64,000 nt of DNA from the IMG/VR virus record IMGVR_UViG_3300033145_003233, positions 483,944 to 547,943 of that record; one strand, 5' to 3'. Both the position numbers and the translations under genes were made by a program. Under the pieces are notes generated by a model, which searched no databases, was not told the DNA's origin, and saw only the letters and a program-made list of their open reading frames with translations. Below, piece after piece: positions 24,220 to 38,818 of the stretch (position 1 is the stretch's first letter; each line of letters starts with the position of its first letter).

Positions 24220-24481
24220 TATGCTCTCTCCTCTTTTTCTCTAAATTTAATTTTCTTTTTCTTCTAACCTCTTTCGTAAAATCACTTTCTCCGACCCTAA
24301 TCTCAACTTCATGCCCCGCGCCCTTTAGAAAAAGAACCTCATAAAGAGTACGAACCACACTATCGCTTTTATCTAAATACATATTAATACACTTTTTCAT
24401 GCCCTCAATAGACATAAATTCAGGAGAAATTCCATTAATTATTATAGGCTTTCCCACTATGTCATCTTCCATATCTTTCAC
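24212..24481 (-). CDS. Hypothetical protein
   Basis: 89 aa; overlaps both neighbours, consistent with translational coupling. Confidence 0.6.
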   Translation of the reverse strand: MKDMEDDIVGKPIIINGISPEFMSIEGMKKCINMYLDKSDSVVRTLYEVLFLKGAGHEVEIRVGESDFTKEVRRKRKLNLEKKRREHNE

Positions 24482-24696
24482 TCCAAATCTAAAATTTCAA
24501 ATCTATTCTTTATTGGATTATCTTCTATCTCAGCATCATCTAAATTCTCTTTTTCTATTTCTTTTATCCAATCAGAATATCCTCCTCTAACCGGCTCCAC
24601 CATTGCTTCTGCCAAAGCCGACCGGCCCTCTGGGGTGCTCAGCGCCTCAGATAGTATCATTTCCTTATCAGCGTCCGATAGGGGAGTAATTGGCAT
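24478..24696 (-). CDS. Small protein with capsid-N-arm-like N-terminus and C-terminal NRFEILDLE tag
   Basis: 72 aa; PLSDADKEMILSEALSTPEGRSALAEAMVEPVR, then an acidic linker and the tag. Confidence 0.7.
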   Translation of the reverse strand: MPITPLSDADKEMILSEALSTPEGRSALAEAMVEPVRGGYSDWIKEIEKENLDDAEIEDNPIKNRFEILDLE

Positions 24697-24697
24697 T

Positions 24698-25042
24698 TTA
24701 TACCCCTAATTCTTTCATACCTGTAATTATCGACTCTAAATCTAAAATTTCAAACCTATTATCAACTGGGTCATACTCACTATTAACTACACACTTCTTT
24801 GCTTTCTCTGATAGATTTTCTTTTTCTTTATCTTGTTTTTTCATCATATCTTTAGTATAAAGATAATAATACGGAATTTTATTCTGATATAAAAATTGCC
24901 TAACTAAACCCAAGTCTATTCTCTCTTTGTCAAAACTATAATATGGAAAAACTTTTTGAAAATCCAACTTATTCACCAGCTTTCTTATCATTCTTCTACC
25001 AGGAGGACAATTCAAACTATATTTATACCTTTTTATTTTCAT
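24698..25042 (-). CDS. Hypothetical protein with near-C-terminal NRFEILDLE motif
   Basis: 114 aa; YDPVDNRFEILDLE followed by 11 more residues. Confidence 0.65.
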   Translation of the reverse strand: MKIKRYKYSLNCPPGRRMIRKLVNKLDFQKVFPYYSFDKERIDLGLVRQFLYQNKIPYYYLYTKDMMKKQDKEKENLSEKAKKCVVNSEYDPVDNRFEILDLESIITGMKELGV

Positions 25043-25614
25043 CCCAGTAAATCCTCTAACTCATCTGCATTACTTAATATCGTATTTTTTTGCTTTTCTT
25101 CTTTATAATGAACAGATTTCACCTCTGTCCCTTCTACTATTTCATCGACCGCCCTAGCATTAATCTCTGCAAGCATTTCTTCGTCCATTTCTACCTCCTC
25201 ATCTTGTCTTTCAGATTGCCCACCTTCCTTTATTATTATAGTTTCTTTATTAGCAGGCATAGCCTCCAATAAAGTTTGAGTCATTTGTGTTAAATCTTGA
25301 CTAGACATCCCACCTTTAGGTTGCTTATCCAATATCTCCTTCATAGTGTCTTTCATCTCTCCTATAATATCTTGCTTCATTTTATCTAAATCGGAAGATT
25401 TAGGATCTTTTTCTGTTCTAACCGGAACATTCAACGCATCTTTAACTCTTATTTCTATATCACCTTTTTTCTTCGCCATTAATAGATGTTTAGAAGCTTC
25501 GGATTTAGCTCTCGGCATTATCCTATCTAAATCAATAGCCTGCCTAGGCCCTAATGACAGAGCTATATCTCCAAGAGTTATATGTTGTTTTGTTTTATTA
25601 ACAATAAAAAACAT
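25039..25614 (-). CDS. Hypothetical protein
   Basis: 191-aa ORF in operon. Confidence 0.65.
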   Translation of the reverse strand: MFFIVNKTKQHITLGDIALSLGPRQAIDLDRIMPRAKSEASKHLLMAKKKGDIEIRVKDALNVPVRTEKDPKSSDLDKMKQDIIGEMKDTMKEILDKQPKGGMSSQDLTQMTQTLLEAMPANKETIIIKEGGQSERQDEEVEMDEEMLAEINARAVDEIVEGTEVKSVHYKEEKQKNTILSNADELEDLLG

Positions 25615-25616
25615 AA

Positions 25617-25787
25617 TTACATTCTTCTAGTTTTAGGATATGGGCTAGCGTCTGCTGTTAATTCTATTTTACTCTCTTTTTTACATTCAGGGCACATATA
25701 ATATATTTTACCATCTCTAAAATTTATTTCTATATTAGGGTCCTTATCATGATTCCTACAATGAGAACAAACCACAGTTATATTCAT
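25617..25787 (-). CDS. Small zinc-ribbon protein, 56 aa, below ORF-track cutoff
   Basis: Manual translation MNITVVCSHCRNHDKDPNIEINFRDGKIYYMCPECKKESKIELTADASPYPKTRRM; two CxxC; fills the gap between neighbours. Confidence 0.7.
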   Translation of the reverse strand: MNITVVCSHCRNHDKDPNIEINFRDGKIYYMCPECKKESKIELTADASPYPKTRRM

Positions 25788-26350
25788 ATATCAATCATTT
25801 CACTATTAAGCATATCAATCATTTCATCATCTTCTTTATGTTTGATTTTTCTTTCAACAGTAACTATCGTATCGTTATGAATTCCTCCATGTGGAACTAA
25901 TAAGATTTCTACTATCTCAAAACCCCTTGTTTTACCTACCCCATTAGAATTCCACCCACAACTAATAACGATGCCATTATCTTTAATCACTCTTGATATT
26001 CCATCTCTAGCTTCACTCCAAAACGTAGTCCTAGTATTATCTGCGGTCGATTCTAATCCGATACCATCATAGACTCTTTTAACCTGAGTAGGGGAATAGG
26101 GGGGATCATAAATAATACCATCAGCATACTTATCATCAAACATCTTTAAAAACTTTCTGGCATCGATGTGATAATTTGTGTCCATTTTGGGATTTAAATC
26201 GTTGGTTATAGTAGCTGGGCTATAACGACCTGCAAAGGGATCTAACCATATTTTATTTCTATCCACGTACCTTGCAAGCAACTCTTTAATCGGTTTTATC
26301 TTAAAAGTCCATTTATTAGGCATGTTCCATATTCTTTTTATTTCCATCAT
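25784..26350 (-). CDS. DNA N6-adenine methyltransferase
   Basis: SAM-binding LDPFAG and catalytic DPPY motifs. Confidence 0.85.
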   Translation of the reverse strand: MMEIKRIWNMPNKWTFKIKPIKELLARYVDRNKIWLDPFAGRYSPATITNDLNPKMDTNYHIDARKFLKMFDDKYADGIIYDPPYSPTQVKRVYDGIGLESTADNTRTTFWSEARDGISRVIKDNGIVISCGWNSNGVGKTRGFEIVEILLVPHGGIHNDTIVTVERKIKHKEDDEMIDMLNSEMIDI

Positions 26351-26437
26351 ATAGCTTCCCTATAAAAAATGTAGGATATCCTATTTAATATCGTGTTTAT
26401 TTGATAGAGTTCTTGAGATATTTCCATTAAAAATAAA

Positions 26438-29400
26438 TTATGAGAACAATTTATTGAAGAAATGGTCATATTCCCTTCTAGCACTATAAATAAGTTCATC
26501 TATTAAGTAGGAGTTGGAAGATGTAGAAGCGTACTTATAATTTTTCATCTTGGTAAATTGAGATATTTTTGTCATAGCTCTTTGATATGATATATATGCT
26601 AATTTTAGAGCAGATAAATCTATTTGATAATTATGCCGTTCTAACATAGACTTTAATTGTAATTTGATACTATTAGCTTTATCTTGCATCTGTTTTAAGC
26701 CAGGAACAGTCTTCTTCTTACCTTCCTGAGATTTATAACCACTTTTATGCTTATCTATTTTTTCATTTATTTTGGCTAATTTACCAGATGTAGCTTTCTG
26801 CCCTAATGCTGTATAATAACTATCTGGCAACTGACTAGCTCCATCCCACTTGTCCAAAGTTCTTTCAACCTCTTCCCTCAATTGTGGGGCTAATTTACTT
26901 ATAACCCTTCTATATGCAATATCATCTTTTACAATCCTCATAGCTTTATCATTAGCATAACCGACATATTCTGCCTTCTTTTGTTCTAGTTCTTTAATTT
27001 TATCTACTTTGTCTTCCGCTAATCTTTGCAAAGAATCAAAAGTGCTATATAGTTTAAAAAATTGACCATACCATGTGGCAGAATTTATTGTTGGAGCACC
27101 ATGAGATGTTCTTCTAGAATGTTTAAGACCATCATTATATACTTGATATAGCGTCTTAACATGTGATGGAGGTTCTTCCCCTCTTATTAAATAATATAAT
27201 TCCGTATTAGTTCTTTGTTTATCATCAAATGGATTAACAGAGCTACCAGTAGATAAAAAATTCCTCATCTTGGTGGGATGATGATCAAATAAATCTATTA
27301 ATGCTCTTCTAGCAGATGGTGAGCCTCCTCCACCTGTTTCCACGGAACGGGCAAGATATCCTAAAAGAGGAGTGTATGTTGTCCCCATAATAGCTTTCAA
27401 CTGCTTAACTTCTATTTTCTCCTCTACTGATAATTCTTTCATCGCTTTATCTTTCTTCTCTGGATCTTTATATTTTTTAGCTCTACGCTTTTCTATATTT
27501 TCTTTCTTTTTATAAGTATCTGTAAAAACTTTTATTTGATCATCACTTTGAATAGTTGTCATATAAATAAAATTATCTATTTTTCTATTAGCCTCAGATG
27601 GTCTATCTTTTGGAGTGACATTCGAAAATTGCTTTAGAAGAGAATCTGTCCTAGGATCTGTTCTTAGCACTTCTCTTATCCCATCTATAGTGCTATTCTT
27701 TTTGTTTAATTTCTTGATCTGTCCTTTTATTTCTCCCAAATTAGCCTCTGCTAGGAATGGAATCCTATAATTAGTCATCTGCTTCCAATCAGGAACGAAT
27801 GGAGAAGCTATCTCTCCATCTGCCAACCTCTTCTTGTATATTTCAACATATTCTTGAAAACCTTGTACAGTAGTTCTTTCTCCTTCTTCGTCATCCTTAG
27901 ATTTACCAATATTAAACATCTGCTTTAATATGTCCGATGGAATATTTATCTTCCCGAATCTATTTTTATAACTCATAGTTTTGTCCTCTTGACGAAGCGC
28001 TCTCCCTCTTGTCTTGAATAAAGCTTCAAGCTGTTGTGTAATAGATTTAGAATAAGAATTCATTCTTTCCGCAAATGTGTACCTCTTAATAAAAGGCTCC
28101 TGTGATTTTCTTATTCTTTTTATGTCATCAGTATCTATCATCCCAACCATTTTTTGATCTAATCCTCTGCACTTATCTACATTTTCATTCATCATAGTAT
28201 GAACAGAATCTGACGCTAATTGCTGCATAATATCCAGCTCTCCTTGCAAATAGCTTCTCGTAATGGCTGCCACCATTTTAGATGACCTATCCATATCTGA
28301 GTCACTAACAGGATCTCTGCCCATATCTTTAGAGGTAAGACCCGCTAGGTTTTTAGACATAGGATCACCTTCTTCGTCTTCTCCCTGATTATAACTAGCC
28401 CCACTCCCACCAACATCTACATTAAAAATATCTGTTTTTAGCCATTGAGATATAGCAGGATCAAATTTACTTATAAGTTCTTCTAATTTTTTATATAATT
28501 CCTGAGCCTTTTCATTATGTAATATATTTAATATTCTTGATTTATTATGTTTTAGCCCCCATGCCTGAGATAGTATTTCATTAGCTTCTCCATGCAACCC
28601 CATTCTAGCTGATTCTGTTTTTAATCTATCTTCAAAAGATGGATCTGATTTTATAATAGGAACAAGATGATGAGGATATTTTAAAAAGAAATTCATTCTC
28701 TGATCCAGCCCACCTTCTGGAGGAGAACTTAATTTGTTAGCTGTTGCCTGACTTATCATGGCTTCATATTTTTCATTAAAAATATTTCTTGGAGGAATAG
28801 GATGCCCCCAACCTTCCAATACAGCCAATCTTTCCGGCGGCTTTAAATCCAAATAAAGTTTAGCTGCCTTAATATCTAGTCGTGGATCGGGTAAGGATAT
28901 CGGTTGAGCATAAGGATCTGGGCCTCCTTTTCTGGCTTTATCTTCTTCAATAGCCCTTGCTCTCGCTTCTTCTTCAGCCATCTCTGATTCTCTTTGAGTT
29001 ATATCTCCCATCAATCCTTCTGTCTTGGCCAACATGGTATCAACAAATAAACTAGCCTTTTGTTTATCCCCCACAAAAGCCTCCAACTTCGCCACAAAAG
29101 AGTCTTTATATCTAGAATTAGTAAGCATGGCTTGATATAAAACAGGATCTGGGGATAAATAAGAATCAGAAGGAGATACATTTTTTTTGGTCATTAGCTC
29201 AGGCAGAGCATATTGGCTTTCAACTTCCAGTTCTTTTTGATTTTCCCTTATCCACATATCCATCCTTTGATCTATATCTTCTGGCAAATCTCCTGAATGA
29301 TAAACTACTGGAGATGATTGAGGAGGCATTTCTTGAGCTGGCTCCTGAATAGCATTTGGATCTTCGACAAATTCCGGATGGGCCTTATAAAATGCTGCTT

Positions 29401-29524
29401 CTTCGGCAGTCCAATTTTTATCTGCTTTCTTCCTTCTTAAATTAAACGAACTATAAGAGCAGGAATTATTTTTAACAATTCTAAGAATTCTTTGTAACGC
29501 GACCATTATTTTCCCATAGAGCAC
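26438..29524 (-). CDS. Large hypothetical protein, 1028 aa, possibly head-internal
   Basis: Long charged helical ORF; no catalytic motif recognised. Confidence 0.7.
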   Translation of the reverse strand: MLYGKIMVALQRILRIVKNNSCSYSSFNLRRKKADKNWTAEEAAFYKAHPEFVEDPNAIQEPAQEMPPQSSPVVYHSGDLPEDIDQRMDMWIRENQKELEVESQYALPELMTKKNVSPSDSYLSPDPVLYQAMLTNSRYKDSFVAKLEAFVGDKQKASLFVDTMLAKTEGLMGDITQRESEMAEEEARARAIEEDKARKGGPDPYAQPISLPDPRLDIKAAKLYLDLKPPERLAVLEGWGHPIPPRNIFNEKYEAMISQATANKLSSPPEGGLDQRMNFFLKYPHHLVPIIKSDPSFEDRLKTESARMGLHGEANEILSQAWGLKHNKSRILNILHNEKAQELYKKLEELISKFDPAISQWLKTDIFNVDVGGSGASYNQGEDEEGDPMSKNLAGLTSKDMGRDPVSDSDMDRSSKMVAAITRSYLQGELDIMQQLASDSVHTMMNENVDKCRGLDQKMVGMIDTDDIKRIRKSQEPFIKRYTFAERMNSYSKSITQQLEALFKTRGRALRQEDKTMSYKNRFGKINIPSDILKQMFNIGKSKDDEEGERTTVQGFQEYVEIYKKRLADGEIASPFVPDWKQMTNYRIPFLAEANLGEIKGQIKKLNKKNSTIDGIREVLRTDPRTDSLLKQFSNVTPKDRPSEANRKIDNFIYMTTIQSDDQIKVFTDTYKKKENIEKRRAKKYKDPEKKDKAMKELSVEEKIEVKQLKAIMGTTYTPLLGYLARSVETGGGGSPSARRALIDLFDHHPTKMRNFLSTGSSVNPFDDKQRTNTELYYLIRGEEPPSHVKTLYQVYNDGLKHSRRTSHGAPTINSATWYGQFFKLYSTFDSLQRLAEDKVDKIKELEQKKAEYVGYANDKAMRIVKDDIAYRRVISKLAPQLREEVERTLDKWDGASQLPDSYYTALGQKATSGKLAKINEKIDKHKSGYKSQEGKKKTVPGLKQMQDKANSIKLQLKSMLERHNYQIDLSALKLAYISYQRAMTKISQFTKMKNYKYASTSSNSYLIDELIYSARREYDHFFNKLFS

Positions 29525-29579
29525 AAATTAACCATAAATGAATATTATGATTTTTATGGTACAAACCTTTATTTTTCCC

Positions 29580-30017
29580 TTATTCATCAGGGTCATTATC
29601 TTGAGGATCATACACTATTAAACTAACATTGCTGTTTTGAGTGCATTTAATAGAATGAAGACCGTACATAACAAATTTTACATCTTCTGGTTTATAGTGC
29701 TCCATTTGCTCTCTTACTACTTGCCAAAATTTTGTAGGAACATAAACGCTTTTTCCTTTTAATATCTTAGCTCTTAATGACAGAACATCGTATCCATATG
29801 CCTCCTTAAGATCATCAAGCCTTTCATCTATTTCATTACGATAAAAGAGGTCATTCCATCCATCAGCCAAATAAGAATTATCTAGAAATCTCTTTTGCTC
29901 TGACGGCAAACTCTTATATATGAGTTTTCTTTGCGCTCGAGACAAATATTTAGCATAGTACCAATATTCACTAAAACTATTAAAAACTGGCTTTTTTAAC
30001 ATTTTATATGCCTCCAT
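29580..30017 (-). CDS. Hypothetical protein
   Basis: 145-aa ORF. Confidence 0.65.
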   Translation of the reverse strand: MEAYKMLKKPVFNSFSEYWYYAKYLSRAQRKLIYKSLPSEQKRFLDNSYLADGWNDLFYRNEIDERLDDLKEAYGYDVLSLRAKILKGKSVYVPTKFWQVVREQMEHYKPEDVKFVMYGLHSIKCTQNSNVSLIVYDPQDNDPDE

Positions 30018-30021
30018 GAGA

Positions 30022-30303
30022 TTATAAATTTACTATCTCCATACAAACAGCATGATGAGTCACAAATGCCAAACAATCAACATTGTTTTCCTTCAAAAAA
30101 ACAATAAATTTATCTTGGATCTCTTTAATTTGTTCTGGTGAAGCTGGATCAGCAGAAGTGCCAACTCTTATATGAATAAATTTTCCCTCTAAATCTTTAA
30201 TCTTTGTAGTTTTAACAACTTTCTTATTTTGCTTTTTAGAAATTGTTTTCTTGGATTTACTTTTATTCATATTTTCTTTCCCTTTTTTTATTTCTTTACT
30301 CAT
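30022..30303 (-). CDS. Hypothetical protein
   Basis: 93-aa ORF with upstream AAGGAG. Confidence 0.6.
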   Translation of the reverse strand: MSKEIKKGKENMNKSKSKKTISKKQNKKVVKTTKIKDLEGKFIHIRVGTSADPASPEQIKEIQDKFIVFLKENNVDCLAFVTHHAVCMEIVNL

Positions 30304-30604
30304 TGTTATTCTCCTTCATTTTTGTTTCAAATCTTGGAGGAACTACCTTAATATCTCCACGATCTAATAACCATGTATTCTTAGTATTTAACCTATCATT
30401 GCAATATTCAATAATCATCTTACTTTCTAATCTAATAGGCTTACCACTTAATAAAAACTCTATTAAACTGGGATTAAGATCTTTTGTCTCTTCAGTTACT
30501 CTAACAACCATCTCCCGAAGTATGGCTGACGGAATGAACATAAATTCAGCACCATTAAAGGCATAATTTAAAGCTATATTTTTTTCATGTTCTGTTAATC
30601 CCAC
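30296..30604 (-). CDS. Hypothetical protein
   Basis: 102-aa ORF, GTG start. Confidence 0.55.
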   Translation of the reverse strand: MGLTEHEKNIALNYAFNGAEFMFIPSAILREMVVRVTEETKDLNPSLIEFLLSGKPIRLESKMIIEYCNDRLNTKNTWLLDRGDIKVVPPRFETKMKENNNE

Positions 30605-30741
30605 AATAAAGATCCCTTAAATTAATAATCTATTTAAGTATCGGCAAAATTGACTGCCAAAAATGAATAAGATATGACATAATGGCAGTTTCTATTTTTA
30701 TAAATCCTAGATTCTGCACGATTATATAAGATTTGGAACAT

Positions 30742-30757
30742 TGGCACGAAAATTGCT
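30742..30757 (+). promoter_or_regulatory. Sigma54 (RpoN) -24/-12 promoter
   Basis: TGGCACGAAAATTGCT is an exact match to consensus TGGCACG-N4-TTGC[AT], in an intergenic gap. Confidence 0.7.
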
Positions 30758-31433: not shown

Positions 31434-32417
31434 TTAAAAGTTATAACGAATAGTGATTCCTGTCCATACTTCTGCATCAGAATTCCCATCTCCAGCAAGA
31501 GTGTCATCTAGGTAATAGATGTAATTCACAGAAGGAGTAACAATAATACCGCTAGCCAGCTCCATATCAAACAATACACCAACAGTAACATCTGTAAACT
31601 TATTTTCACTACTCTCGAAACCTTCACTATAATTCAATCTTAAATATATATCAGTCAGCCACTTTTCAGTTAATGGCCTATAATAATCAAGACCTCCAGT
31701 GAAAACAGTTCCATCATATTCATTAACATTATTTCCCTGATCGTCCAATTTTAAATTCCATACTTTACCCACATAAAAACTTGGAACTAATGTCCCTTTT
31801 CCTTCAAAAACAAACAAATTTGGGAAAGCCAATCCCACTCCAAACTCTTGACCATCATCTCCGTCCTCAGCATTAGTTAAATCATAATAAATCTCAGAAA
31901 TAGAAAGCTGAACTTGATGTTTTTCTCCCTCAAATATATTTTGGACATAATAAACTTTATAATTATTTTGCTTAGCCTTCTCTGATCCTTCCCTCTTCGT
32001 TCCCATAGGAGACCAATTCATAATATCCAGATAAAGCTGTCCAGGAAGCTCAGTAATCTTAGGAATTCTATAATTCACACCATATCCCACAGCCCCCTTG
32101 TCATCAAACCAATCTTGACCATACCACTTATGTTTCGATTTAAACACAGTTCTAGCAGTAACCTCGGAATCCCCTAAATACTGACCGAGATCTATCCCGA
32201 AAACATTATTCCTTACTTTAGGAGTATGCATCAGATCAATATTCGGAATAGTAGGGATATTAGGCACTATTGACAGAGTATCGAAATTGAAAAACGAAGA
32301 TGGGATCACTGGAACAACTGGAATAGAAGGCTCCGGCTCTGGAACTTCTTGTGCCATTACGGGCACAAAAAACAACAACACACACAGAAAAGTAATTAAT
32401 AACATACCTTTTCTCAT
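31434..32417 (-). CDS. Secreted outer-membrane beta-barrel (porin-like) protein
   Basis: Sec signal MRKGMLLITFLCVLLFFVPVMA, alternating aromatic beta-strands, C-terminal VWTGITIRYNF with terminal Phe. Confidence 0.7.
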   Translation of the reverse strand: MRKGMLLITFLCVLLFFVPVMAQEVPEPEPSIPVVPVIPSSFFNFDTLSIVPNIPTIPNIDLMHTPKVRNNVFGIDLGQYLGDSEVTARTVFKSKHKWYGQDWFDDKGAVGYGVNYRIPKITELPGQLYLDIMNWSPMGTKREGSEKAKQNNYKVYYVQNIFEGEKHQVQLSISEIYYDLTNAEDGDDGQEFGVGLAFPNLFVFEGKGTLVPSFYVGKVWNLKLDDQGNNVNEYDGTVFTGGLDYYRPLTEKWLTDIYLRLNYSEGFESSENKFTDVTVGVLFDMELASGIIVTPSVNYIYYLDDTLAGDGNSDAEVWTGITIRYNF

Positions 32418-32452
32418 AACTTTCTCCTTTTAAACTAACATTTAAAATACTT

Positions 32453-32701
32453 TCAACTTGAATTATTCGTCATATTTTGTTGTTTTTCTTTATTAGAAAA
32501 ATTCTTTAATGCTTTATTAACTGCTTTATAGTTTCTATATCGTAATAATGTTCTTATTTTTTCCATCCAATAAGGGCTAACATTATAATAAGTATAAGTC
32601 GGCCCTCCATTAAAAGAAATGCCCAGCTCCCCAGCTTGATCATAAGAAGTAATAACTATGGGAGCAGGCCTATATTGTTGGGATATCTTATACCAATTCA
32701 C
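32453..32701 (-). CDS. KTSC-like domain protein
   Basis: ITSYD..GELGISFNGG.TYTYYNV pattern; N-terminus MNWYKISQ. Confidence 0.55.
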   Translation of the reverse strand: MNWYKISQQYRPAPIVITSYDQAGELGISFNGGPTYTYYNVSPYWMEKIRTLLRYRNYKAVNKALKNFSNKEKQQNMTNNSS

Positions 32702-33075
32702 TACTTAGCCATCCTTCTTTCTTCATATCTTTTTCCCTTTACCTGTCTTTCTATTACTAATTCAGATAACCTAGCTTCTGCTTGTTTTAATGCCTCTTTT
32801 TCCATAGGGGTAGGCGGAGCAGGTTCTTTCTTTTGCTCAAAAACCTGATAATTCTTCATTTGTTGAATATGTTGCTGTTGCTGAAAAACCCGATCATCAG
32901 AAATAGCCATATCCACTCTTTCATTAATCAATTCGTCATTCTCTACCCTAACTTTAACCTCTTCTTTAACTTCAGCATCTTTAGCAAAATATTTTTCAAT
33001 AGCAAATAAGGTTCCACCAATAGTTATAATACCAATAATAAGGCCAACTACTATTTGCACTTTACCTAACTTCAT
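32701..33075 (-). CDS. Single-pass membrane protein with coiled coil
   Basis: Hydrophobic VQIVVGLIIGIITIGGTLFAI, then charged helix. Confidence 0.65.
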   Translation of the reverse strand: MKLGKVQIVVGLIIGIITIGGTLFAIEKYFAKDAEVKEEVKVRVENDELINERVDMAISDDRVFQQQQHIQQMKNYQVFEQKKEPAPPTPMEKEALKQAEARLSELVIERQVKGKRYEERRMAK

Positions 33076-33141
33076 ATTTCTATCCCTCCAAAATAAATTT
33101 ATACTGATATATATTGAGAAATAGGATTGAAAAACCTCTTA

Positions 33142-33387
33142 TTATCTTGCGTGGAAATGATAATGTTCAGGGATTGCCCTTCTTTTAAAATCCAACTCGG
33201 CATCAGGGAAATACTCTTTGGCATGATCCACCATAACTTCAACTTCTTCTTCAGTAGGAAATACATGACTTTTCCATACATACATAGGAACTTCGCACTT
33301 CATACAATCCATCACGACAAAATCATCTTCTTCAAAATGCCATGTGGTTACTTTTTCTAACTTACATAATCTACATTCTTTAGCCAT
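33142..33387 (-). CDS. Small HIT-like protein
   Basis: N-terminal CxxC and C-terminal HYHFHA histidine triad. Confidence 0.6.
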   Translation of the reverse strand: MAKECRLCKLEKVTTWHFEEDDFVVMDCMKCEVPMYVWKSHVFPTEEEVEVMVDHAKEYFPDAELDFKRRAIPEHYHFHAR

Positions 33388-33575
33388 TACAAATCCAATA
33401 TATCTAATCTATTGAGAGGCTTGGGTTTTCGTCCTCTTTTTTTCTTTTTAGATAAAACTATTTTACCATCTTTAACGGTAATCTTAAAGTCCTTCTCTAA
33501 TTCTTTCAAATCTGGAAGAGAATTAAGCATATTTTTCAACAACTTATTCCTCTCTTCTGTAAACTCAAAACCCAC
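33387..33575 (-). CDS. Small protein ending NRLDILDL
   Basis: 62 aa; stop overlaps next start. Confidence 0.65.
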   Translation of the reverse strand: MGFEFTEERNKLLKNMLNSLPDLKELEKDFKITVKDGKIVLSKKKKRGRKPKPLNRLDILDL

Positions 33576-33583
33576 TATAAATC

Positions 33584-34171
33584 CTATAACAATTTTTCAT
33601 ATTCTACAAAATTATGATCATCAAAGCAAACTATTTGGACCAAATCTATATAAGTATATACATGACTATTAAAAAAATTCCAAAAAGCATTAATTGCTAC
33701 TTCTGCGGCAACATCTTTTGGAAAACAATACGCTCCTGTAGAGATACAAGGAAATGCTATAGATTTTAATCCCTGAAGCTCTGCTAATAACAAACAACTT
33801 TTATAACAGTTTTCTAGCATCTCTTTTTTTATTTCGGGAGAAACACCATCAGTCCAAACAGGCCCAACGGTATGAATTATATATTTAGAAGGCATATTAT
33901 AAGCCCCAGTAATCCTGGCCTCTCCTTGAGGGCATCCATATAAATTAAGACATTCTCCCAGAAGTTTTTGCCCAGAAGCCTGATGCATAGCTCCATCAAC
34001 TCCTCCTCCACCTGTTAAATCATCATGCGCAGCATTTACTACTGCATCTACTTCCAATTGAGTTATGTCCCCCCGAATTAACTCGATATCAACATATGGA
34101 GTCTTTTCATTAGTTTCTCTCTCCATCATACTTACTTCTAAATCTTTACTAATTTCTTCCATGTCAGACAT
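33584..34171 (-). CDS. Macro-domain ADP-ribose hydrolase, YmdB/MacroD-like
   Basis: GDITQLEVDAVVNAA...GGGGVDGAMH...IIHTVGP...SIAFPCISTGAY. Confidence 0.9.
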   Translation of the reverse strand: MSDMEEISKDLEVSMMERETNEKTPYVDIELIRGDITQLEVDAVVNAAHDDLTGGGGVDGAMHQASGQKLLGECLNLYGCPQGEARITGAYNMPSKYIIHTVGPVWTDGVSPEIKKEMLENCYKSCLLLAELQGLKSIAFPCISTGAYCFPKDVAAEVAINAFWNFFNSHVYTYIDLVQIVCFDDHNFVEYEKLL

Positions 34172-34192
34172 AACTTTCTCCCAATCTATAAT

Positions 34193-34471
34193 CTATGTAA
34201 CTGATTCTCGTAATAAGCTATCTTCCTCTGCCTGTCCGTTTCTATCATCTCCTCCTTCTCCATCTGATTTAGATTCCTCAATGCTTCCTTGAACACTTTC
34301 CTCCTCTGTTTTTTCTCTTTCCTGGCTTTTCTTATCGTAGTCATCGATTGCTCTCCTCACTTTTTGTTCTCTATCGATTATTTCGCTCATTTCTTTTAAA
34401 CAACAATGTTTGTACTTGCGGTCACTACCACAAGGACATTTCTCATTTCTCCCTATCTTATTCTTACTCAT
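34193..34471 (-). CDS. SEC-C motif protein
   Basis: IGRNEKCPCGSDRKYKHCC. Confidence 0.85.
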   Translation of the reverse strand: MSKNKIGRNEKCPCGSDRKYKHCCLKEMSEIIDREQKVRRAIDDYDKKSQEREKTEEESVQGSIEESKSDGEGGDDRNGQAEEDSLLRESVT

Positions 34472-34480
34472 TTCCCCCCC

Positions 34481-34768
34481 CTATAAATCCAATATTTCGT
34501 ACCTGCTTACTACCTTAGATGATTTTTTGTGAGAACCTCTTTTATTAAGAGATGGACAGACAGAAGATATAGTCGGGATAGACTCCTTATTGCGTCTCCT
34601 AGCAAGAATCTTTTTTATCCTGTCAGGATCTGCAATGGCCTTATAGGTTTTAGTAGGTCTACCCCGATATATCGCTGGCTCAAATAATCTATCATCCCAA
34701 ATATAAAATTTAGAATGAGGAGTTACTCTTTCTCCCTGCTCGCTTATTATTTCCGCCGAAACTCTCAT
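34481..34768 (-). CDS. Small basic protein ending SRYEILDL
   Basis: 95-aa ORF. Confidence 0.65.
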   Translation of the reverse strand: MRVSAEIISEQGERVTPHSKFYIWDDRLFEPAIYRGRPTKTYKAIADPDRIKKILARRRNKESIPTISSVCPSLNKRGSHKKSSKVVSRYEILDL

Positions 34769-34782
34769 ATAAATATTATCGG

Positions 34783-35202
34783 CTAGAAATCTCCTCCACC
34801 ACTATCGAAATCGCTGCTACCATAATCACTGCTGCTGCCACTGTCAGTATCGCTACTGCCAAAGTCGCTGCTATCGGATGTAATTTCCTCTACAGCTACG
34901 GCTGATTCAGCTTCAACTGCCTCAGGCTCCACTTCTTCAAACGTCAACTCCATCATTTCATCTACAGACTCATCAAATTCCGACATAACTTCCTCATCTA
35001 ATAGAAGTAAATACAGAACGACTAGTTCTACATCAAGGATATCATCATCGTAATCATAAATATCTACACTAGTGCGTGTAGGATATTTTTTACGAAGTTC
35101 TTTTAACCTTTTTACCTTTTCTTCTTTCGACAAGTTTTTCAACTCTTTTTCCTGCTCTGCAATGCTCTTCGCATTCTTCTCTTTTCTACTAAATCCTAAC
35201 AT
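34783..35202 (-). CDS. Hypothetical protein with acidic Ser/Asp/Gly tail
   Basis: 139 aa; SD AAGGAAAG upstream. Confidence 0.6.
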   Translation of the reverse strand: MLGFSRKEKNAKSIAEQEKELKNLSKEEKVKRLKELRKKYPTRTSVDIYDYDDDILDVELVVLYLLLLDEEVMSEFDESVDEMMELTFEEVEPEAVEAESAVAVEEITSDSSDFGSSDTDSGSSSDYGSSDFDSGGGDF

Positions 35203-35249
35203 AACTTCTTTCCTTTCTTCAAAAATGTATTACTAGAAAACAACAATTT

Positions 35250-36182
35250 TTACCCTAAAATATTACAAATTTTGTCAATTTGTATCTTATGGGTCTTTAT
35301 TAATTTCTTTGCTTCTAACTTGAGATTATCAATATTCCCTTTTGTAACATTATCCATATCATCTGAAGCCACAACAAGACTTGTTTGTAATCTTATAAAA
35401 GAATCTCCAAGAATTTGTTTCATCTGATAATCTACAACATCACTAGCCCCATCAAACATGCAACTCAACAAAGGAACCGTCCATCCAACAAGACCCCAAT
35501 CCTTAGCCTCTGAATAAGAAATAGATCTTGTTAATTCTCCAGTCCCTAAAGACACAACAAAAATTTCTTTTTCATCAGGAAATAATCTTTTACATTCAGC
35601 ATACGCAGATACAGCTGGATTATTTACAAATACCCCACCATCAATCAAAACCCTTGTACCGCTACCCACTTGGATAGATGCTGGTTCAAAATACGTTGGA
35701 GCAGCCGAAGTAGCTCTTGCTACAAGTCTCATTTCTGTAGTATTCCACTCATCTCTCCAACTCTTAAAGAAATAAGGCTCTCTATTCTGTATATCATAAC
35801 TAGTTATCAACACATTTTTCAACGAAGCTCCCAAAGGCTCATTTTTAAAATATTCTTTAAGAACTTTTTCTAAACCTTTCTCAGAATATTTCTCATTACC
35901 CAAACCTCCTATTGAAGAGAACCCCTTCCAAAGAGAACGTGGGAAAATCTCTTTTCCTTTTTTCTCATACAGTTCAGCAAAATCCTGAGCAGTATATTTA
36001 GAGCCTCCATTGCCATCGTTGTGGGACATACCCAACGCTATTATCCCACCAGTTGAAGTCCCAGCTAAAAAATCAAATAATTTAGCGACACTCTTCCCTG
36101 TTCTTTTTTCAATCTCAGCCAATATTAATGCTGGGATGATTCCTCTAATCCCACCACCATCTATAGATAAAACACATTTCAT
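35250..36182 (-). CDS. Patatin-like phospholipase
   Basis: DGGGIRG oxyanion loop, GTSTG nucleophile elbow, DGG catalytic Asp. Confidence 0.92.
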   Translation of the reverse strand: MKCVLSIDGGGIRGIIPALILAEIEKRTGKSVAKLFDFLAGTSTGGIIALGMSHNDGNGGSKYTAQDFAELYEKKGKEIFPRSLWKGFSSIGGLGNEKYSEKGLEKVLKEYFKNEPLGASLKNVLITSYDIQNREPYFFKSWRDEWNTTEMRLVARATSAAPTYFEPASIQVGSGTRVLIDGGVFVNNPAVSAYAECKRLFPDEKEIFVVSLGTGELTRSISYSEAKDWGLVGWTVPLLSCMFDGASDVVDYQMKQILGDSFIRLQTSLVVASDDMDNVTKGNIDNLKLEAKKLIKTHKIQIDKICNILG

Positions 36183-36260
36183 TATTACTCCCCCTAAATA
36201 TCCAAAATATCAAATCTATCTATGTTATCTATTACCGTCTCCTTAAAATCTTTCCTCTAA

Positions 36261-36518
36261 TCATTTCTCCTCGTTGAAAGCATCTTTATAAGATTTGTCT
36301 GTTAAAAAATGACAAGCTCCAGCTCTAAATTTCATTCTCTTATAATTATCGATAAGAGGTAAAATGGTTAAAATCGCCCCCAATTTTTTCCAGTTAGACC
36401 ACCCAAACATAGAATCATAGGTTGACCACCACTTATTATTAACACCAAACCTGTTGGTTCTAAAAATAAGATGGACGCCTATTTTCCAATTCTTAACAAA
36501 ATATCTAATTCTCCCCAT
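36261..36518 (-). CDS. Hypothetical protein
   Basis: 85-aa ORF. Confidence 0.5.
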   Translation of the reverse strand: MGRIRYFVKNWKIGVHLIFRTNRFGVNNKWWSTYDSMFGWSNWKKLGAILTILPLIDNYKRMKFRAGACHFLTDKSYKDAFNEEK

Positions 36519-36526
36519 TTACAAAT

Positions 36527-36820
36527 CTATACTTGAGATTGTCTTCTCTTCAATTCTCGTCTTCTCAGCAACTCTTTTCTTTGTAAAATATCCACAGATT
36601 TTTTACTAGGAACAGGGGCATCTCCGTCTGCCTTCTTAAAAACAATCTTGGGCATTAGATGTTTATTCCGATCTTCCCATCCCATCGAATAGCCCGCAAA
36701 AAAGATACCTAGGACTATAGCAAGAAGCAAAAGAACAACAGATGCCCTTCTTACAACCTTCTTCCATGTAGGATTTTGAACCCTGTCAAAATACGCTCGG
36801 TTTTCATAACCTGGTCTCAT
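36527..36820 (-). CDS. Single-pass membrane protein
   Basis: Hydrophobic ASVVLLLLAIVLGIFFAGY; SD AGGAG; directly downstream of sigma70 promoter. Confidence 0.65.
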   Translation of the reverse strand: MRPGYENRAYFDRVQNPTWKKVVRRASVVLLLLAIVLGIFFAGYSMGWEDRNKHLMPKIVFKKADGDAPVPSKKSVDILQRKELLRRRELKRRQSQV

Positions 36821-36879
36821 CAGTCAATCTCCTTCTTTCTAAATCCATAAAATCAACAATCACTATTATATACTATTGT

Positions 36880-36908
36880 ATTATACCACCTTTTCACTTT
36901 CAAGTCAA
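36880..36908 (-). promoter_or_regulatory. Sigma70-type (early) promoter
   Basis: TTGACT-N17-TATAAT on the minus strand, 60 nt upstream of ATG 36820. Confidence 0.8.
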
Positions 36909-37042
36909 ATTAAAAAATTAATAACAATAGCAACAATTAACCTCATAACTACCCTCTATATTGCCTCCACAAGCCCTCAGATCGTCCAGAATCAACTTTA
37001 ATGAACAAGTGGAGTAAATATGCCTTATTTTACTTTTAAGCC

Positions 37043-37243
37043 CTATAAATCTAAAATCTCGAATCTATTTTCTATGGGTTCTGGATTAAGTACATTAGCA
37101 ATACGTTCCCAGCCTATAGACCGATGACAATCAGCACAAAGCAAACGGCTACGAGTTTTGCCAGATGAAGAGACAATAATACGATCAACAAAAAGTGTGC
37201 AATCAACTCCGTCTTTGCCGCAAGCTAAACAGAAACTTCCCAT
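37043..37243 (-). CDS. Small zinc-finger protein ending NRFEILDL
   Basis: CxxC...CxxC; 66 aa. Confidence 0.7.
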   Translation of the reverse strand: MGSFCLACGKDGVDCTLFVDRIIVSSSGKTRSRLLCADCHRSIGWERIANVLNPEPIENRFEILDL

Positions 37244-37249
37244 TTCTTC

Positions 37250-37456
37250 CTACAAATCTAAAATATCAAAACGGCTCTCTATTATTTCTTTTTTAACTAT
37301 TTTTCTCTTCTCTTTCGCAACATGCCATGCTCCACAAGCACAAGGACCATCTATAGTATCGCATCTAACCCCACCATTACTTCCTAAATCGACATATTGG
37401 GAATGAGCATCTACTAATCCAAAATCCAAAGCTCCATCAACATAACAACATGCCAT
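37250..37456 (-). CDS. Small Cys-rich protein ending SRFDILDL
   Basis: CDTIDGPCACGAWH; 68 aa. Confidence 0.65.
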   Translation of the reverse strand: MACCYVDGALDFGLVDAHSQYVDLGSNGGVRCDTIDGPCACGAWHVAKEKRKIVKKEIIESRFDILDL

Positions 37457-37515
37457 TAACTCATCAAAAGTATGGATATGCTTCTCTGGATTATTCTTTA
37501 TATGCCCTAATTTGT

Positions 37516-37764
37516 CTAACCTTCCGATTTTTCTTCCCTTTTCCTAAAAGCCCTTTTTAAAACACCTTCATTATCTACATCTTTACCCCCATCATAAGAT
37601 AAAGGAATATCAAAATATAAAGCACATGCAGAAGCAGCTTCTCGACCCACTGGATACCAACTAGTTAATGACTCTCCGCTCTCAGATTGAAAGAATAATT
37701 CAGATTTACATAAAACTAGTAAAGTGCATTTATCTATTATCTCAAACATTATTTTTACTCCCAT
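37516..37764 (-). CDS. Hypothetical protein
   Basis: 82-aa ORF. Confidence 0.5.
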   Translation of the reverse strand: MGVKIMFEIIDKCTLLVLCKSELFFQSESGESLTSWYPVGREAASACALYFDIPLSYDGGKDVDNEGVLKRAFRKREEKSEG

Positions 37765-38282
37765 GAAAAATCATCTTCCTCGTCAACTTTAGATAATTGT
37801 TTCAGATCTTCTAAAGAATGATTTAAGTCATCTTGTTGTAGGGCATAAGTTTTGCCATACCCCAAATCAGTAATATTATCTTCGCTGATAAGATCATTAC
37901 AATACACCCACCCAACAAAAGTATAAGTAGGCAATTCCCCTACCATTAAAACATATATATCTACATCATTTTTCTCCTTCTTAATATATCCTAACAATCT
38001 TCCTGTTTTATACGAAGTTTGCTTGATATCTATTCTATTATCATCTAGCAAAACATCATAACCACCTTTTCTAGGCTCTATAGAAAAATCAGGGTACAAA
38101 TTACATAATTTACAAAAAGCCAACTCAGCACCAAAACCATCTATATCAGTTATAGCATTACTTTGGCCTCCCATTTTTGCATCATGGACGCCTGCTTTTC
38201 TATTGGATTCGTATCTTAATTGAGCAACTTTTTTAACTATTGCTTGCTCCATATCATCTAAAACAACTATTTTTGAGTCCAT
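37755..38282 (-). CDS. PD-(D/E)xK-like nuclease-fold protein
   Basis: GAELAF...YDV...IDIKQT pattern; SD GGAG. Confidence 0.5.
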   Translation of the reverse strand: MDSKIVVLDDMEQAIVKKVAQLRYESNRKAGVHDAKMGGQSNAITDIDGFGAELAFCKLCNLYPDFSIEPRKGGYDVLLDDNRIDIKQTSYKTGRLLGYIKKEKNDVDIYVLMVGELPTYTFVGWVYCNDLISEDNITDLGYGKTYALQQDDLNHSLEDLKQLSKVDEEDDFSWE

Positions 38283-38291
38283 TTTTCTCTC

Positions 38292-38627
38292 CTACAAATC
38301 TAAAATATCATATCTGCTATATATCTTTTCCACCTCTGCCCTCAAAATATCGACTTCTTCCCTTAAGCCTTTTATCTCCTCCATAAATGCGACTCTCTCT
38401 AACTCTACATTTTTATTTAATACATAAATTTTCCCTGTTGTATTAAAAACATTGCTTTCTGCCCCCTTCTTTTTACCCCATTGACGATTGCCTAAGAATT
38501 TTACCTTAATACTCTTTTGCCTAACTTTAATTATTTCTGCTTCTTCATGAACCATCCCGCCAGGACCACTACGAAAATAAAACACATGCTGCCCTACACG
38601 CAACTCTATTTGCACCATATCTCTCAT
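38292..38627 (-). CDS. Small beta-domain plus coiled-coil protein ending SRYDILDL
   Basis: 111 aa. Confidence 0.65.
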   Translation of the reverse strand: MRDMVQIELRVGQHVFYFRSGPGGMVHEEAEIIKVRQKSIKVKFLGNRQWGKKKGAESNVFNTTGKIYVLNKNVELERVAFMEEIKGLREEVDILRAEVEKIYSRYDILDL

Positions 38628-38818
38628 TATAAATCTAAAATCTCAAATCTACTATTGATAGGATCATAATACTCTACATCATATCTATCATGACAATAAC
38701 TTTCATCACACTTTCTACAAAATGGCATAACGTCCCCCTTATCTACCATGTTAAAGGACTTAAACGAATCCCATGGAAATTCTCTACCACAATGATAACA
38801 TATATATATCTTATTCAC
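38627..38818 (-). CDS. Small zinc-finger protein ending SRFEILDL
   Basis: CYHC...CRKC; GTG start after AGGAG. Confidence 0.7.
   Translation of the reverse strand: MNKIYICYHCGREFPWDSFKSFNMVDKGDVMPFCRKCDESYCHDRYDVEYYDPINSRFEILDL

Follow-up and report, generated by a model that had tools for sequence, protein, structure and literature searches.

We analyzed a 64,000-nt stretch of DNA (the window), the last 64 kb of a 547,943-bp contig from an uncultivated huge phage (IMG/VR record IMGVR_UViG_3300033145_003233), in which otherwise unrelated small proteins end in the same short peptide. In order of position, a gene for an actin-like protein (23194-24219; Pfam Volactin, 4.4e-59) is followed by eight tagged ORFs on the minus strand, a remnant of a ninth tag, and two promoter-like sites:

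24478-24696 (-), tagged ORF of 72 aa; the tag NRFEILDL is at 24507-24484 and is followed by one Glu through a stop loss (TAG to GAG); orthologues (L002:9605-9829 and others; L numbers are our handles for related sequences) end at the tag.
24698-25042 (-), tagged ORF of 114 aa; the tag NRFEILDL is at 24760-24737 and is followed by a 12-residue read-through tail (TAG to GAG); an orthologue (L169:6013-6321, 65% identity) ends exactly at NNRFEILDL.
33387-33575 (-), tagged ORF of 62 aa, basic, ending in KPLNRLDILDL (tag 33413-33390).
34481-34768 (-), tagged ORF of 95 aa, basic, ending in VVSRYEILDL (tag 34507-34484).
36197-36256 (-), orphan tag remnant, a 20-codon frame without a start codon that ends in TVIDNIDRFDILDI and a stop; it is out of frame with the upstream 85-aa ORF (36261-36518), which stops at TGA 36263-36261.
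36880-36908 (-), near-consensus sigma-70-type promoter (TTGACT-17-TG-TATAAT, 11 of 12) in the 222-nt gap downstream of the 37-38.8 kb tagged cluster.
37043-37243 (-), tagged ORF of 66 aa, CxxC...CxxC zinc-ribbon-like, ending in EPIENRFEILDL (tag 37069-37046).
37250-37456 (-), tagged ORF of 68 aa, Cys-rich, ending in IIESRFDILDL (tag 37276-37253; Arg encoded by CGT).
38292-38627 (-), tagged ORF of 111 aa with 8 orthologues, predicted by AF2 (pLDDT 81) to form a small beta-barrel (residues 14-69) and a long C-terminal helix (74-110) that runs into the tag, KIYSRYDILDL (tag 38318-38295); structure matches were weak (Tudor/PWWP/SH3-like).
38627-38818 (-), tagged ORF of 63 aa, zinc-ribbon-like, ending in DPINSRFEILDL (tag 38653-38630).
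40458-40486 (-), sigma-70-type promoter-like site (TTGAAA-17-TATAGT, 10 of 12) in the gap upstream of the block that contains the 37-38.8 kb tagged cluster.

We first asked whether the shared tag, originally noticed in a sequence-only reading of the window, was real. It was: all eight ORFs have the reported ends and C-termini, the strict motif occurs nowhere else in any of the six frames of the window, and 7e-5 hits are expected anywhere in the proteome given its amino acid composition, compared with 8 observed. (For 24698-25042, the earlier notation of NRFEILDLE plus 11 residues and ours of NRFEILDL plus 12 are the same thing.) Five of the eight carry a Pro 2-3 residues before the [NS], and codons differ synonymously between copies (AGA/AGG/CGT, GAA/GAG/GAT, ATT/ATA, and TTA/TTG), both as had been claimed. 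None of the eight bodies clusters with another by BLASTP, and none has a significant Pfam hit. We made three additions. The orphan copy (DRFDILDI and a stop, 36217-36197) is a ninth instance. The two extended tags are derived stop-codon losses, because an orthologue of 24698-25042 ends exactly at the tag. Finally, the full motif is longer than reported, spanning 11 residues: P(-10) I(-9) x [SND] R F [ED] I L D [LI].

The phenomenon proved much larger than the window. In the 27% of the phage genome that could be sampled, 66 distinct small ORFs carry the tag, mostly in long gap-free arrays, and about 300 more, in about 119 body families, occur in related viral and metagenomic contigs. In two sets, 68 of 75 and 324 of 364 proteins (about 89%) end exactly at the tag, usually after a charged, Pro-containing linker. 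The proteins lack transmembrane segments and signal peptides and are mostly acidic (median pI 5.2). The tag is specific to a phage lineage: DNA matches in unrelated phages and in cellular genomes are internal or lie in tiny frames. A search of the literature and of solved structures (PDB) found no precedent.

We next examined what is conserved. Among 238 tags there are 156 distinct 21-mers, every third position is variable, Arg uses both AGR and CGN codons, and nucleotide similarity stops at the tag; selection therefore acts on the peptide, and the tag is not a DNA repeat. The tag is also modular. Bodies fall into 53 of 75 and 119 of 297 clusters, and a tryptophan-repeat body that is tagged here is untagged in Bacillus phage G (gp556/gp558) and in coliphage EJP2 (gp302).

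The motif is ancestral, in looser form and often with short tails, on a few proteins of the replication module, whose orthologues keep diverging versions of it across lineages. One is a conserved 263-aa HExxH protein (a putative zinc-metallopeptidase) with 103 orthologues. This protein has no Pfam or PDB relative, and its structure prediction had low confidence (pLDDT 51). Only in the window's subclade did the tag become uniform and spread genome-wide, to at least 66 genes per genome. Near-consensus sigma-70-type promoters were found only in front of the small-gene arrays and not in front of structural genes, which suggests that the arrays are early genes, although this evidence rests on a consensus scan only.

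Taken together, these data are best explained by a modular C-terminal short linear motif that lets many different small, soluble, mostly acidic phage proteins be recognized by one conserved receptor. The sequence data establish the peptide-level selection, the extreme C-terminal position, the attachment to at least 119 unrelated body families (in one case to a body untagged in other phages), the looser ancestral form in the replication module, and the later uniformity and spread. By contrast, it is inference that the arrays are transcribed early by the host RNA polymerase, that the bodies bind diverse targets, that the tag binds a receptor at all and tethers its carriers, as clients or as adaptors, to a single machine, and that this machine is phage-encoded. 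Many proteins sharing one invariant peptide does argue for one common receptor, and the tag is modeled as the end of a helix with falling confidence, which fits an exposed docking element. We consider a common-receptor docking or recognition tag likely, whereas the explanation as a whole, with its proposed machine, stands at about even confidence.

No receptor was identified. Our best candidate, a tentative one, is a 552-aa Cdc48/p97-like AAA ATPase (an N-domain of residues 1-260 without assignment, then one classical AAA module) encoded two genes upstream of DnaB, next to the ancestral tagged genes. It matches PF00004, its best PDB matches are to p97/VCP (3e-51 over residues 264-505), and it holds a conserved position (AAA, then a 272-aa P-loop protein, then DnaB) in tag-bearing lineages. 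The proposal is by analogy with eukaryotic Wss1/SPRTN proteases and about 40 p97 cofactors, which dock on Cdc48/p97 through short motifs, or with ESCRT-III C-terminal MIM helices, which dock on Vps4. However, the AAA family, N-domain included, also occurs in 29 more distant huge-phage loci that have no tags; its presence is therefore not sufficient, and any core gene specific to the clade would correlate equally well. Moreover, its pore-loop-1 position reads SLVG, without an aromatic residue, as in the non-threading D1 ring of p97, and the tag matches none of the known p97 or Vps4 binding motifs. Because only 27% of the genome was sampled, better receptors (clamp, protease, PDZ or TPR proteins, and capsid proteins) may lie in the remaining 73%.

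The sequence-only reading had inferred a phage-encoded docking code that recruits many small proteins to one hub, and this interpretation is partly supported. Peptide-level conservation, modularity on unrelated bodies, and lineage specificity all held, whereas recruitment remains inferred. Of its proposed hubs, the clamp, the actin-like protein, and the capsid are weakened, and an AAA ATPase or protease remains possible, now with a concrete candidate.

Among the alternatives, a replisome toolbelt motif survives best, although we consider it unlikely. In this view, the tag would dock proteins on a sliding clamp, DnaE-type polymerase, DnaB-like helicase, or SSB, as the C-terminal tails of T4 gp43/gp33/gp55 do on gp45 or the acidic tails of T7 gp4 and gp2.5 do on the polymerase. 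The ancestral carriers lie between primase/helicase and DnaE, two tagged genes sit between the two DnaE halves, and other replisome proteins here also end in acidic-aromatic tails. A replication-associated HExxH protease with a C-terminal docking motif would parallel SPRTN, which has a PIP box. However, the phage's own DnaE ends in SVDMFEDLF and a 92-aa neighbor ends in DEIDMFD, classical clamp-type tails unlike the tag. No DnaN or clamp-loader Pfam hit was seen in 388-429 kb, and a 368-aa candidate is not clamp-like. In addition, more than 60 unrelated ORFan proteins, most in arrays far from the replication genes (137-160 kb), are hard to fit on a replisome.

A degron is more doubtful. The tag could mark early proteins for timed destruction by a host protease (ClpXP, Lon, or FtsH, or a PDZ-type tail-specific protease), like an ssrA tag written into the gene. 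Its place at the exact C-terminus with a hydrophobic last residue, its 11-residue bipartite layout, which recalls ssrA, and the early-looking arrays are consistent with this, and ILDL-COOH fits a class II PDZ ligand (hydrophobic, any, hydrophobic, then the free C-terminus). Yet the sequence is unlike known ClpX, Lon, or Tsp signals, and class 2 tags and the ancestral forms carry tails of 1-7 residues, including Arg, which speaks against a strict need for the free carboxylate. A conserved enzyme (the HExxH protein) keeps the motif across 103 orthologues, which is odd for a mere destruction signal, and the tag is nearly invariant across phages from many different samples.

A virion cargo signal, loading small proteins into the capsid or tail for coinjection like encapsulin cargo-loading peptides, the T4 capsid-targeting sequence, or the P1 Dar proteins, appears less likely still. 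The C-terminal peptide follows a flexible linker as in encapsulin cargo, the carriers are small, the tagged genes of the window lie between tail and fiber genes on the same strand, and the paralogue arrays are arms-race-like. Against this, the promoters sit in front of the arrays rather than the structural genes, the ancestral carriers are replication-module proteins, the bodies are mostly acidic, and no cleavage motif is evident, in sampled sequence that offered no capsid genes for comparison.

Host-directed mimicry is similarly improbable. The core aromatic-x-hydrophobic-L-D-L resembles SUMO-interacting motifs (IVDL/VVDL type), Atg8-interacting motifs ([WFY]xx[LIV]), and the clathrin box (L-hydrophobic-x-hydrophobic-[DE]), and distant variants such as FLDLDDDD and LMDLD occur. 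The tag might dock on a host beta-grasp or beta-propeller protein, for example the membrane-coat-like proteins of Planctomycetota, the probable host phylum. This idea is entirely analogical, and the pattern resemblance is a lead only. The only Ubl gene found (ThiS, L345:12374-12592) is an ordinary host-derived sulfur carrier that was not seen in other tag-bearing phages, and no host protein with the motif was found, although that control was blind to GC-rich genomes.

Two further readings are least likely. Adaptors for the actin-like filament, which would bind the Volactin-family protein as the C-terminal tail of ParR binds ParM, are suggested by the two tagged genes just upstream of the actin-like gene and by a conserved 191-aa protein upstream of it that ends in DELEDLL in all relatives, an acidic, Leu-rich tail of similar flavor. 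However, those two tags are the damaged ones, their genes are lineage-specific insertions between core genes, and at least 64 other tagged genes lie elsewhere. In sister phages the actin neighborhood holds no tagged genes, although diverged forms of the motif occur elsewhere in at least two of those genomes, and the contig we call rel2 was not found by the actin search, though it may be incomplete. A signal at the DNA, RNA, or translation level (recombination joints for cassette shuffling, promoter or processing sites, or a nascent-peptide signal at termination) draws on the orphan remnant, which suggests gene replacement upstream of a retained tag, on codon skew at the last Leu (TTA 177 observed against 90 expected) and at Glu, and on the frequent TAG after the tag, which arises because it overlaps the next gene's Shine-Dalgarno sequence. 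It is countered by the codon diversity and the end of similarity at the tag described above and by persistence of the motif through 34% protein identity in one family; recombination at the tags may help them spread but cannot explain their conservation.

We finally compared the tag with known systems. Sliding-clamp-binding C-terminal peptides (T4 gp43/gp33/gp55 on gp45, the bacterial QL[SD]LF motif, and PIP boxes) are likewise short, often strictly C-terminal hydrophobic-acidic peptides shared by several different proteins that dock on one hub, and the ancestral carriers here are in a replication module. However, the tag has no Gln and no terminal aromatic pair, the phage polymerase carries a different, clamp-type tail, and the number (more than 60 per genome) and nature (ORFan small proteins) of the carriers go far beyond any clamp toolbelt. 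In the cofactor motifs of Cdc48/p97 and Vps4 (SHP, VIM, and VBM; the MIT-MIM interaction; and Wss1/SPRTN protease coupling), many unrelated cofactors share short motifs that dock on the N-domain of a classical AAA ATPase, and here a putative metalloprotease with a C-terminal motif sits next to a p97-like AAA gene in a DNA-replication context. The tag, however, fits none of those consensus sequences, the phage AAA has a single AAA module, and the interaction is purely inferred. The ssrA degron is also an 11-residue C-terminal peptide, and SspB, with its C-terminal ClpX-binding peptide, has the same layout of a body, a flexible linker, and a docking peptide at the extreme C-terminus, but the sequences are unrelated, and this tag is genome-encoded on many genes rather than added by tmRNA, with any protease link hypothetical.

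Encapsulin cargo-loading peptides, microcompartment encapsulation peptides, and the T4 capsid-targeting sequence address unrelated cargo to one protein shell through a short terminal peptide after a linker; here, no shell gene is linked to the tagged genes, the promoters look early, the ancestral carriers are replication proteins, and the consensus sequences differ. The eukaryotic C-terminal sorting signals PTS1 (-SKL) and KDEL similarly place the same few residues, read by a single receptor, at the end of many unrelated proteins, but these signals are 3-4 residues long and belong to organelles, whereas neither a compartment nor a receptor has been identified here. Finally, poxvirus ankyrin/PRANC (F-box-like) proteins are many variable virus-encoded binding proteins that share one C-terminal element, which plugs them into a single effector machine; PRANC is a folded domain of about 30-50 residues that binds host Skp1, whereas the element shared here is a peptide of 7-11 residues.

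To verify the motif, we listed the ORFs across 23.5-39.5 kb and scanned all six frames of the window. This confirmed eight ORFs, all on the - strand, that contain [NS]R[FYL][ED]ILDL: six end exactly on it, one has one extra Glu, and one has 12 extra residues. The eight tagged ORFs claimed by the sequence-only reading are therefore real. The strict motif occurs nowhere else in 64 kb, and from the amino-acid composition 7e-5 hits are expected in the whole predicted proteome. A ninth copy (...DRFDILDI, then a stop; 36217-36197) sits in a 20-codon frame with no start codon, out of frame behind the 85-aa ORF 36261-36518, and is a stranded remnant. The two extended tags are stop-codon losses (TAG to GAG). 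These two adjacent genes both lost their TAG stop through the same T-to-G change (GAT TTR GAG, at 24481-24486 and 24734-24739), which extends the proteins past the tag, and an orthologue of 24698-25042 in another contig ends exactly ...NRFEILDL.

We next asked whether conservation acts on the peptide or on the DNA. In the window, third codon positions vary, while first and second positions are fixed. Because loci had been found with a DNA pattern, we dropped the single proband tag from each locus, which left 238 tags comprising 156 distinct 21-mers. Arg is encoded by AGR 156 times and by CGN 82 times, and every synonymous position varies roughly with the background codon usage, although there is some skew (TTA at the last Leu and GAG over GAA). 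Nucleotide similarity is confined to the tag-coding 21-33 nt and falls to 62-83% over 34-53 nt.

The window is the last 64 kb of IMGVR_UViG_3300033145_003233 (Ga0366840_1000004; 547,943 bp), a tailed phage with no close relative among GenBank phages. It encodes a tail tube protein, lectin-like and collagen-like fibre proteins, and glycosyltransferases; elsewhere, the genome encodes a DnaB-like helicase, DnaG parts, a split DnaE, a gp32-like SSB, RecA, and IF3. Further features of the window and of other loci of this and related phages are as follows:
Window 2525-17944 (-): a single 5,139-aa ORF next to the tail genes, with no Pfam match in either half.
Window 23194-24219 (-) and 25039-25614 (-), and loci L002-L015 of related phages: a Volactin-family actin-like gene (4.4e-59), conserved in 14 other huge-phage contigs, and upstream of it a conserved ~190-aa protein that ends ...DELE[DG]LL in most relatives, possibly a ParR-like tail that binds the actin.
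Window 33584-34171, 35250-36182, 39418-40434, 43217-44041, and 34193-34471: a macro domain, a patatin-like phospholipase, a LAGLIDADG endonuclease, a subtilase (S8), and a small protein with a SecA-type CPCGS...KHCC metal-binding motif, interspersed with the tagged genes. Relatives' loci also hold NADAR and a Tad5-type Thoeris inhibitor, which suggests counter-defence islands.
Window 49121-50869 and 62728-63978: fibre-like proteins with long Ser-rich and collagen (G-x-y) repeats. The Ser repeats read as LELLEL repeats on the opposite strand and gave false loose-motif hits.
L205:6608-8020, 9173-9505, and 10001-11983 (contig ~405-410 kb): DnaE split into a PHP/N-terminal part (470 aa) and a fingers/HhH part (660 aa), with a zinc-finger gene and two tagged genes between them. 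Both the N-terminal part and a 110-aa ORF end ...ELEDDLGGVDRY. Relatives carry inteins with LAGLIDADG domains at this site (loci L187 and L099).
L345:12374-12592 (contig ~145.5 kb): a ThiS sulfur-carrier gene.
L352:6920-7426: translation initiation factor IF3 (IF3_N plus IF3_C).
L053:614-4742: five tandem paralogues of 274-279 aa (ending ...HPF[IL]N[ED](G)), directly next to an array of eight tagged genes.
L353:10734-13179: a cluster of three radical-SAM genes plus a CxxCxxCC protein, an acyl-carrier-like protein, and a CYTH protein, downstream of the replication module.

The ThiS gene is 65-75% identical to Planctomycetota ThiS and has the same unusual ...FMGGG+x ending, marking it as a host-derived auxiliary gene and suggesting the host phylum. 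However, a protein identical to P0166 (L205:4234-5025) is deposited at NCBI under a "Candidatus Asgardarchaeia archaeon" MAG. The bacterial-type IF3, RecA, DnaE, and DnaB and the sigma-70-type promoters argue for a bacterial host and make a binning artefact, in which the phage contig was binned with an archaeal genome, the likelier reading.

To gauge the scale, we searched with a back-translated DNA pattern, which gave 18 matches in this contig, 8 in a 351-kb relative, and 6 in a 298-kb relative; other contigs had single matches. At the protein level, nearly every hit in the three relatives is 0-3 residues from a stop, whereas in unrelated contigs the same DNA pattern is internal or out of frame (126 of 132 unrelated loci have no C-terminal instance). 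One region of this genome (137.8-158.1 kb, continuing into locus L053) is a nearly gap-free array of 62 small genes in 20 kb, about 36 of them tagged. In the 27% of the genome sampled, there are 66 distinct tagged ORFs, and metagenome contigs added at least 238 more in 583 kb. In all, we collected 297 tagged proteins from relatives and other parts of this genome, in 119 body clusters. A control search of cellular genomes returned 20 scattered hits in tiny frames, but this control is weak, as the AT-rich codon pattern cannot see GC-rich hosts such as most Planctomycetota.

The consensus is P(-10) I(-9) x [SND](-7) R F [ED] I L D [LI](0), and 68 of 75 proteins in one set and 324 of 364 in a larger one end exactly at position 0. 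The preceding 10 residues are charged and linker-like. The bodies are 38-263 aa long (median about 100) with a median pI of 5.2; 11 of 75 have at least two CxxC motifs, and only one has a transmembrane-like segment. A second class, a 14-member paralogue family, has Ala or Ser instead of Phe at -5 and usually a 2-7-residue tail. We considered whether a negative charge must follow the last hydrophobic residue, but this rule was not upheld: extensions start with D 13, R 10, S 8, G 6, and E 3 times. We infer that [SND]-R-F-[ED] reads as a helix N-capping box. An AlphaFold model of the 111-aa protein 38292-38627 (pLDDT 81) shows a small beta-barrel plus a long helix that runs into the tag, with falling confidence at the end; its fold matches are weak and Tudor/PWWP/SH3-like.

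With the tag removed, the bodies fall into 53 clusters for 75 proteins, and 37 for 44 in this genome. Pfam and PHROGs searches of 165 tagged proteins showed that almost all are ORFans. Three tagged proteins belong to a repeat family (phrog_3532, annotated "tryptophan repeat gene family") that is multi-copy in jumbo phages. Its members in Bacillus phage G (gp556 and gp558) and Escherichia phage EJP2 (gp302) have no tag, whereas the tagged copies here add a Pro-rich linker plus the tag. Around the actin gene, sister phages keep the core gene order without tagged genes, and the window's tagged genes there are insertions. Nevertheless, of the sister phages L003-L015 and L384, L003 and L384 appear tag-free only if the search is confined to the surroundings of the actin gene and requires Arg at position -6.

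Following the replication module through relatives showed that the motif is older than the uniform tag. In the related loci L206/L351/L360 (DnaE 65% identical), syntenic proteins end ...NRFDLMDF, ...NRFDIMDI-EEEE, ...TRLDYLDI-ESE, and ...SRVDLIDM-D, which is 4 hits against 0.01 expected. In the contig of L003, they end ...TRYDFIEI-EDEEE and ...TRWDLIDV-GEDMDA, and in the 461-kb sister genome they end ...FDVLDL-E, ...FDIIDV-D, ...WDYIDL-ER, and ...FDYIDI-EE, without the Arg. Across 39 loci that carry a homologue of the neighbouring AAA ATPase, all ten with at least 48% identity (this genome included) have the motif on these orthologues, all 29 with 44% or less have none, and the two distant loci inspected lack the orthologues altogether. 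One carrier is a 263-aa protein with an invariant HELCH (HExxH) motif. It has 103 homologues, all with HExxH, of which about 90 keep the motif core within 8 residues of the end, with variants ranging from DRFD[ILF]LDL and GR[YWF]GMLDL to FSFLDF-DD and FGMMDF-G(F). An AlphaFold model of this protein was too poor to use (pLDDT 51). Thus, a loose, near-terminal motif on a few replication-module proteins came first, and the window's subclade then made it uniform, strictly terminal, and genome-wide.

To investigate timing, we scanned for promoters. The only 11-of-12 sigma-70-type matches lie on the coding strand in the rare intergenic gaps in front of small-gene arrays, at window 36908-36880 and at 1322, 2861, and 4945 of locus L345, the last directly upstream of the gap-free tagged array of at least 15 kb. 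The structural regions have none, and their hits are at shuffle level. As this is a consensus scan, it is only modest evidence that tagged genes are early and transcribed by host RNA polymerase.

We then looked for a receptor, and none of the candidates examined could be identified as such. The best candidate is a 552-aa protein encoded two genes upstream of DnaB (L352:7511-9169; PF00004), with one classical AAA module closest to p97/Cdc48/VAT (3e-51 over residues 264-505) behind a 260-residue N-terminal region with no assigned fold. It keeps its position in tag-bearing lineages. Classical AAA ATPases typically read short motifs through their N-domains (p97 cofactors; Vps4 MIT-MIM), and the eukaryotic DNA-protein-crosslink proteases Wss1 and SPRTN dock on Cdc48/p97 through C-terminal short motifs; a p97-like AAA next to a tagged HExxH protein in a replication module is a suggestive parallel. 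However, the AAA family is also present in tag-free distant phages, its pore loop lacks an aromatic residue, and its role as receptor is inferred by analogy alone. A sliding clamp is weakened as a candidate: the phage DnaE ends ...SVDMFEDLF and a neighbouring protein ends ...DEIDMFD, both classical clamp-type tails and unlike the tag, and no clamp gene was found in the sampled 27% of the genome. The 368-aa conserved protein after DnaE was rejected as a clamp because it looks helical, with a conserved ...IGWGDI tail, and has no Pfam or PDB relative. The actin-like protein is also weakened, as the tagged genes around it are insertions that sister phages lack there, and the ThiS-like ubiquitin-fold gene inside the largest array was rejected, given its resemblance to Planctomycetota ThiS and its absence from the other tag-bearing loci examined. 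Pfam searches of 126 untagged neighbours showed no PDZ, TPR, Clp, Lon, or clamp domain among the 25 of 86 families inspected. A profile of the tag against all PDB chain sequences gave only chance internal matches (e.g., an acetylcholine-binding-protein strand; E about 0.4), and literature searches for the exact motif and the topic found nothing relevant.

What the analysis shows is a real, peptide-level, modular C-terminal tag of a huge-phage clade, on a scale not known to us from any other phage; that it serves in docking to or recognition by a common receptor is inferred, as are binding itself, the receptor's identity, and early transcription. The sequence-only proposal of a docking code that recruits many small proteins to one hub is thus partly supported: we consider common-receptor docking or recognition likely, but the phage AAA ATPase is only a tentative choice of receptor. 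A replisome hub is doubtful and a host protease unlikely. The capsid, the actin-like protein, a host mimic, and a DNA-level signal are each very unlikely.

A more far-reaching possibility, which we hold only tentatively, is that a clade of huge phages, probably infecting Planctomycetota, has evolved its own proteome-addressing code. In this view, one genome-encoded C-terminal peptide, written onto 5-10% or more of all genes, would plug a large, fast-evolving repertoire of small early proteins into a single phage-encoded machine, possibly a Cdc48-like unfoldase working with an HExxH protease. This would be a viral analogue of a cofactor or E3-adaptor network, in which each small protein would bring a different host target to be remodelled or destroyed. 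If the receptor is an unfoldase or protease, this would be the first virus-encoded adaptor network of that kind in a phage, and the tag and receptor could also become a portable targeting pair. Most genes of huge phages are small ORFans with no functional handle. The tag groups hundreds of them into a single functional class, predicts that they share a binding partner that a synthetic 11-mer peptide could retrieve, and offers a natural experiment in how a short linear motif is born on a few replication proteins, sharpens, and then spreads across a genome. Even if the receptor proves to be an ordinary hub, the scale is unusual for a phage, with at least 66 genes in 27% of one genome and about 119 body families overall.

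Finally, we compared the tag with known motifs, system by system. It does not fit a DNA repeat or mobile cassette (MITE-like, or PeSL-like as in T4-type phages), as nucleotide conservation does not extend beyond the coding constraint into the flanks. It also differs from encapsulin cargo-loading peptides, which have a C-terminal consensus rich in Gly, Ser, Leu, and basic residues and a cargo gene next to an HK97-fold shell gene; the neighbours here are small ORFans, replication genes, and modification genes, not shell genes. It is unlike ssrA/ClpX-type degrons (...LAA-COOH or a related ClpX motif, dependent on the free alpha-carboxylate), as the sequence differs, 40 of 364 tags carry extensions, including Arg, and tags of the second class mostly have tails. 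L-D-L-COOH fits the class II PDZ ligand pattern (hydrophobic, any, hydrophobic, free C-terminus) in 324 of 364 cases, but the tolerated tails and the ancestral forms with tails argue against a strict carboxylate pocket, and no PDZ protein was seen in the sampled DNA. The bacterial beta-clamp-binding consensus (QL[SD]LF or QLxLxL, with a Gln and a Leu/Phe pair that fills subsite 1) is not matched, as the tag profile has no Gln and ends I-L-D-[LI]; the phage DnaE tail fits that class far better. F-E-I-L and I-L-D-L do fit SUMO-interacting and Atg8-interacting motifs (two hydrophobic residues, any residue, one hydrophobic residue, or [WFY]xx[LIV], flanked by acidic residues), and distant variants carry acidic tails (...FLDLDDDD and ...IMDIEEEE). 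However, this is a pattern match only, and the only beta-grasp (Ubl) protein found is the ThiS, present in this genome only among the loci examined. The tag profile likewise matches none of the known consensus motifs of p97/Cdc48 or Vps4 cofactors (VIM, VBM, SHP, and MIM), although the same genome does encode a classical AAA ATPase with a separate N-terminal region, as such a system would require.
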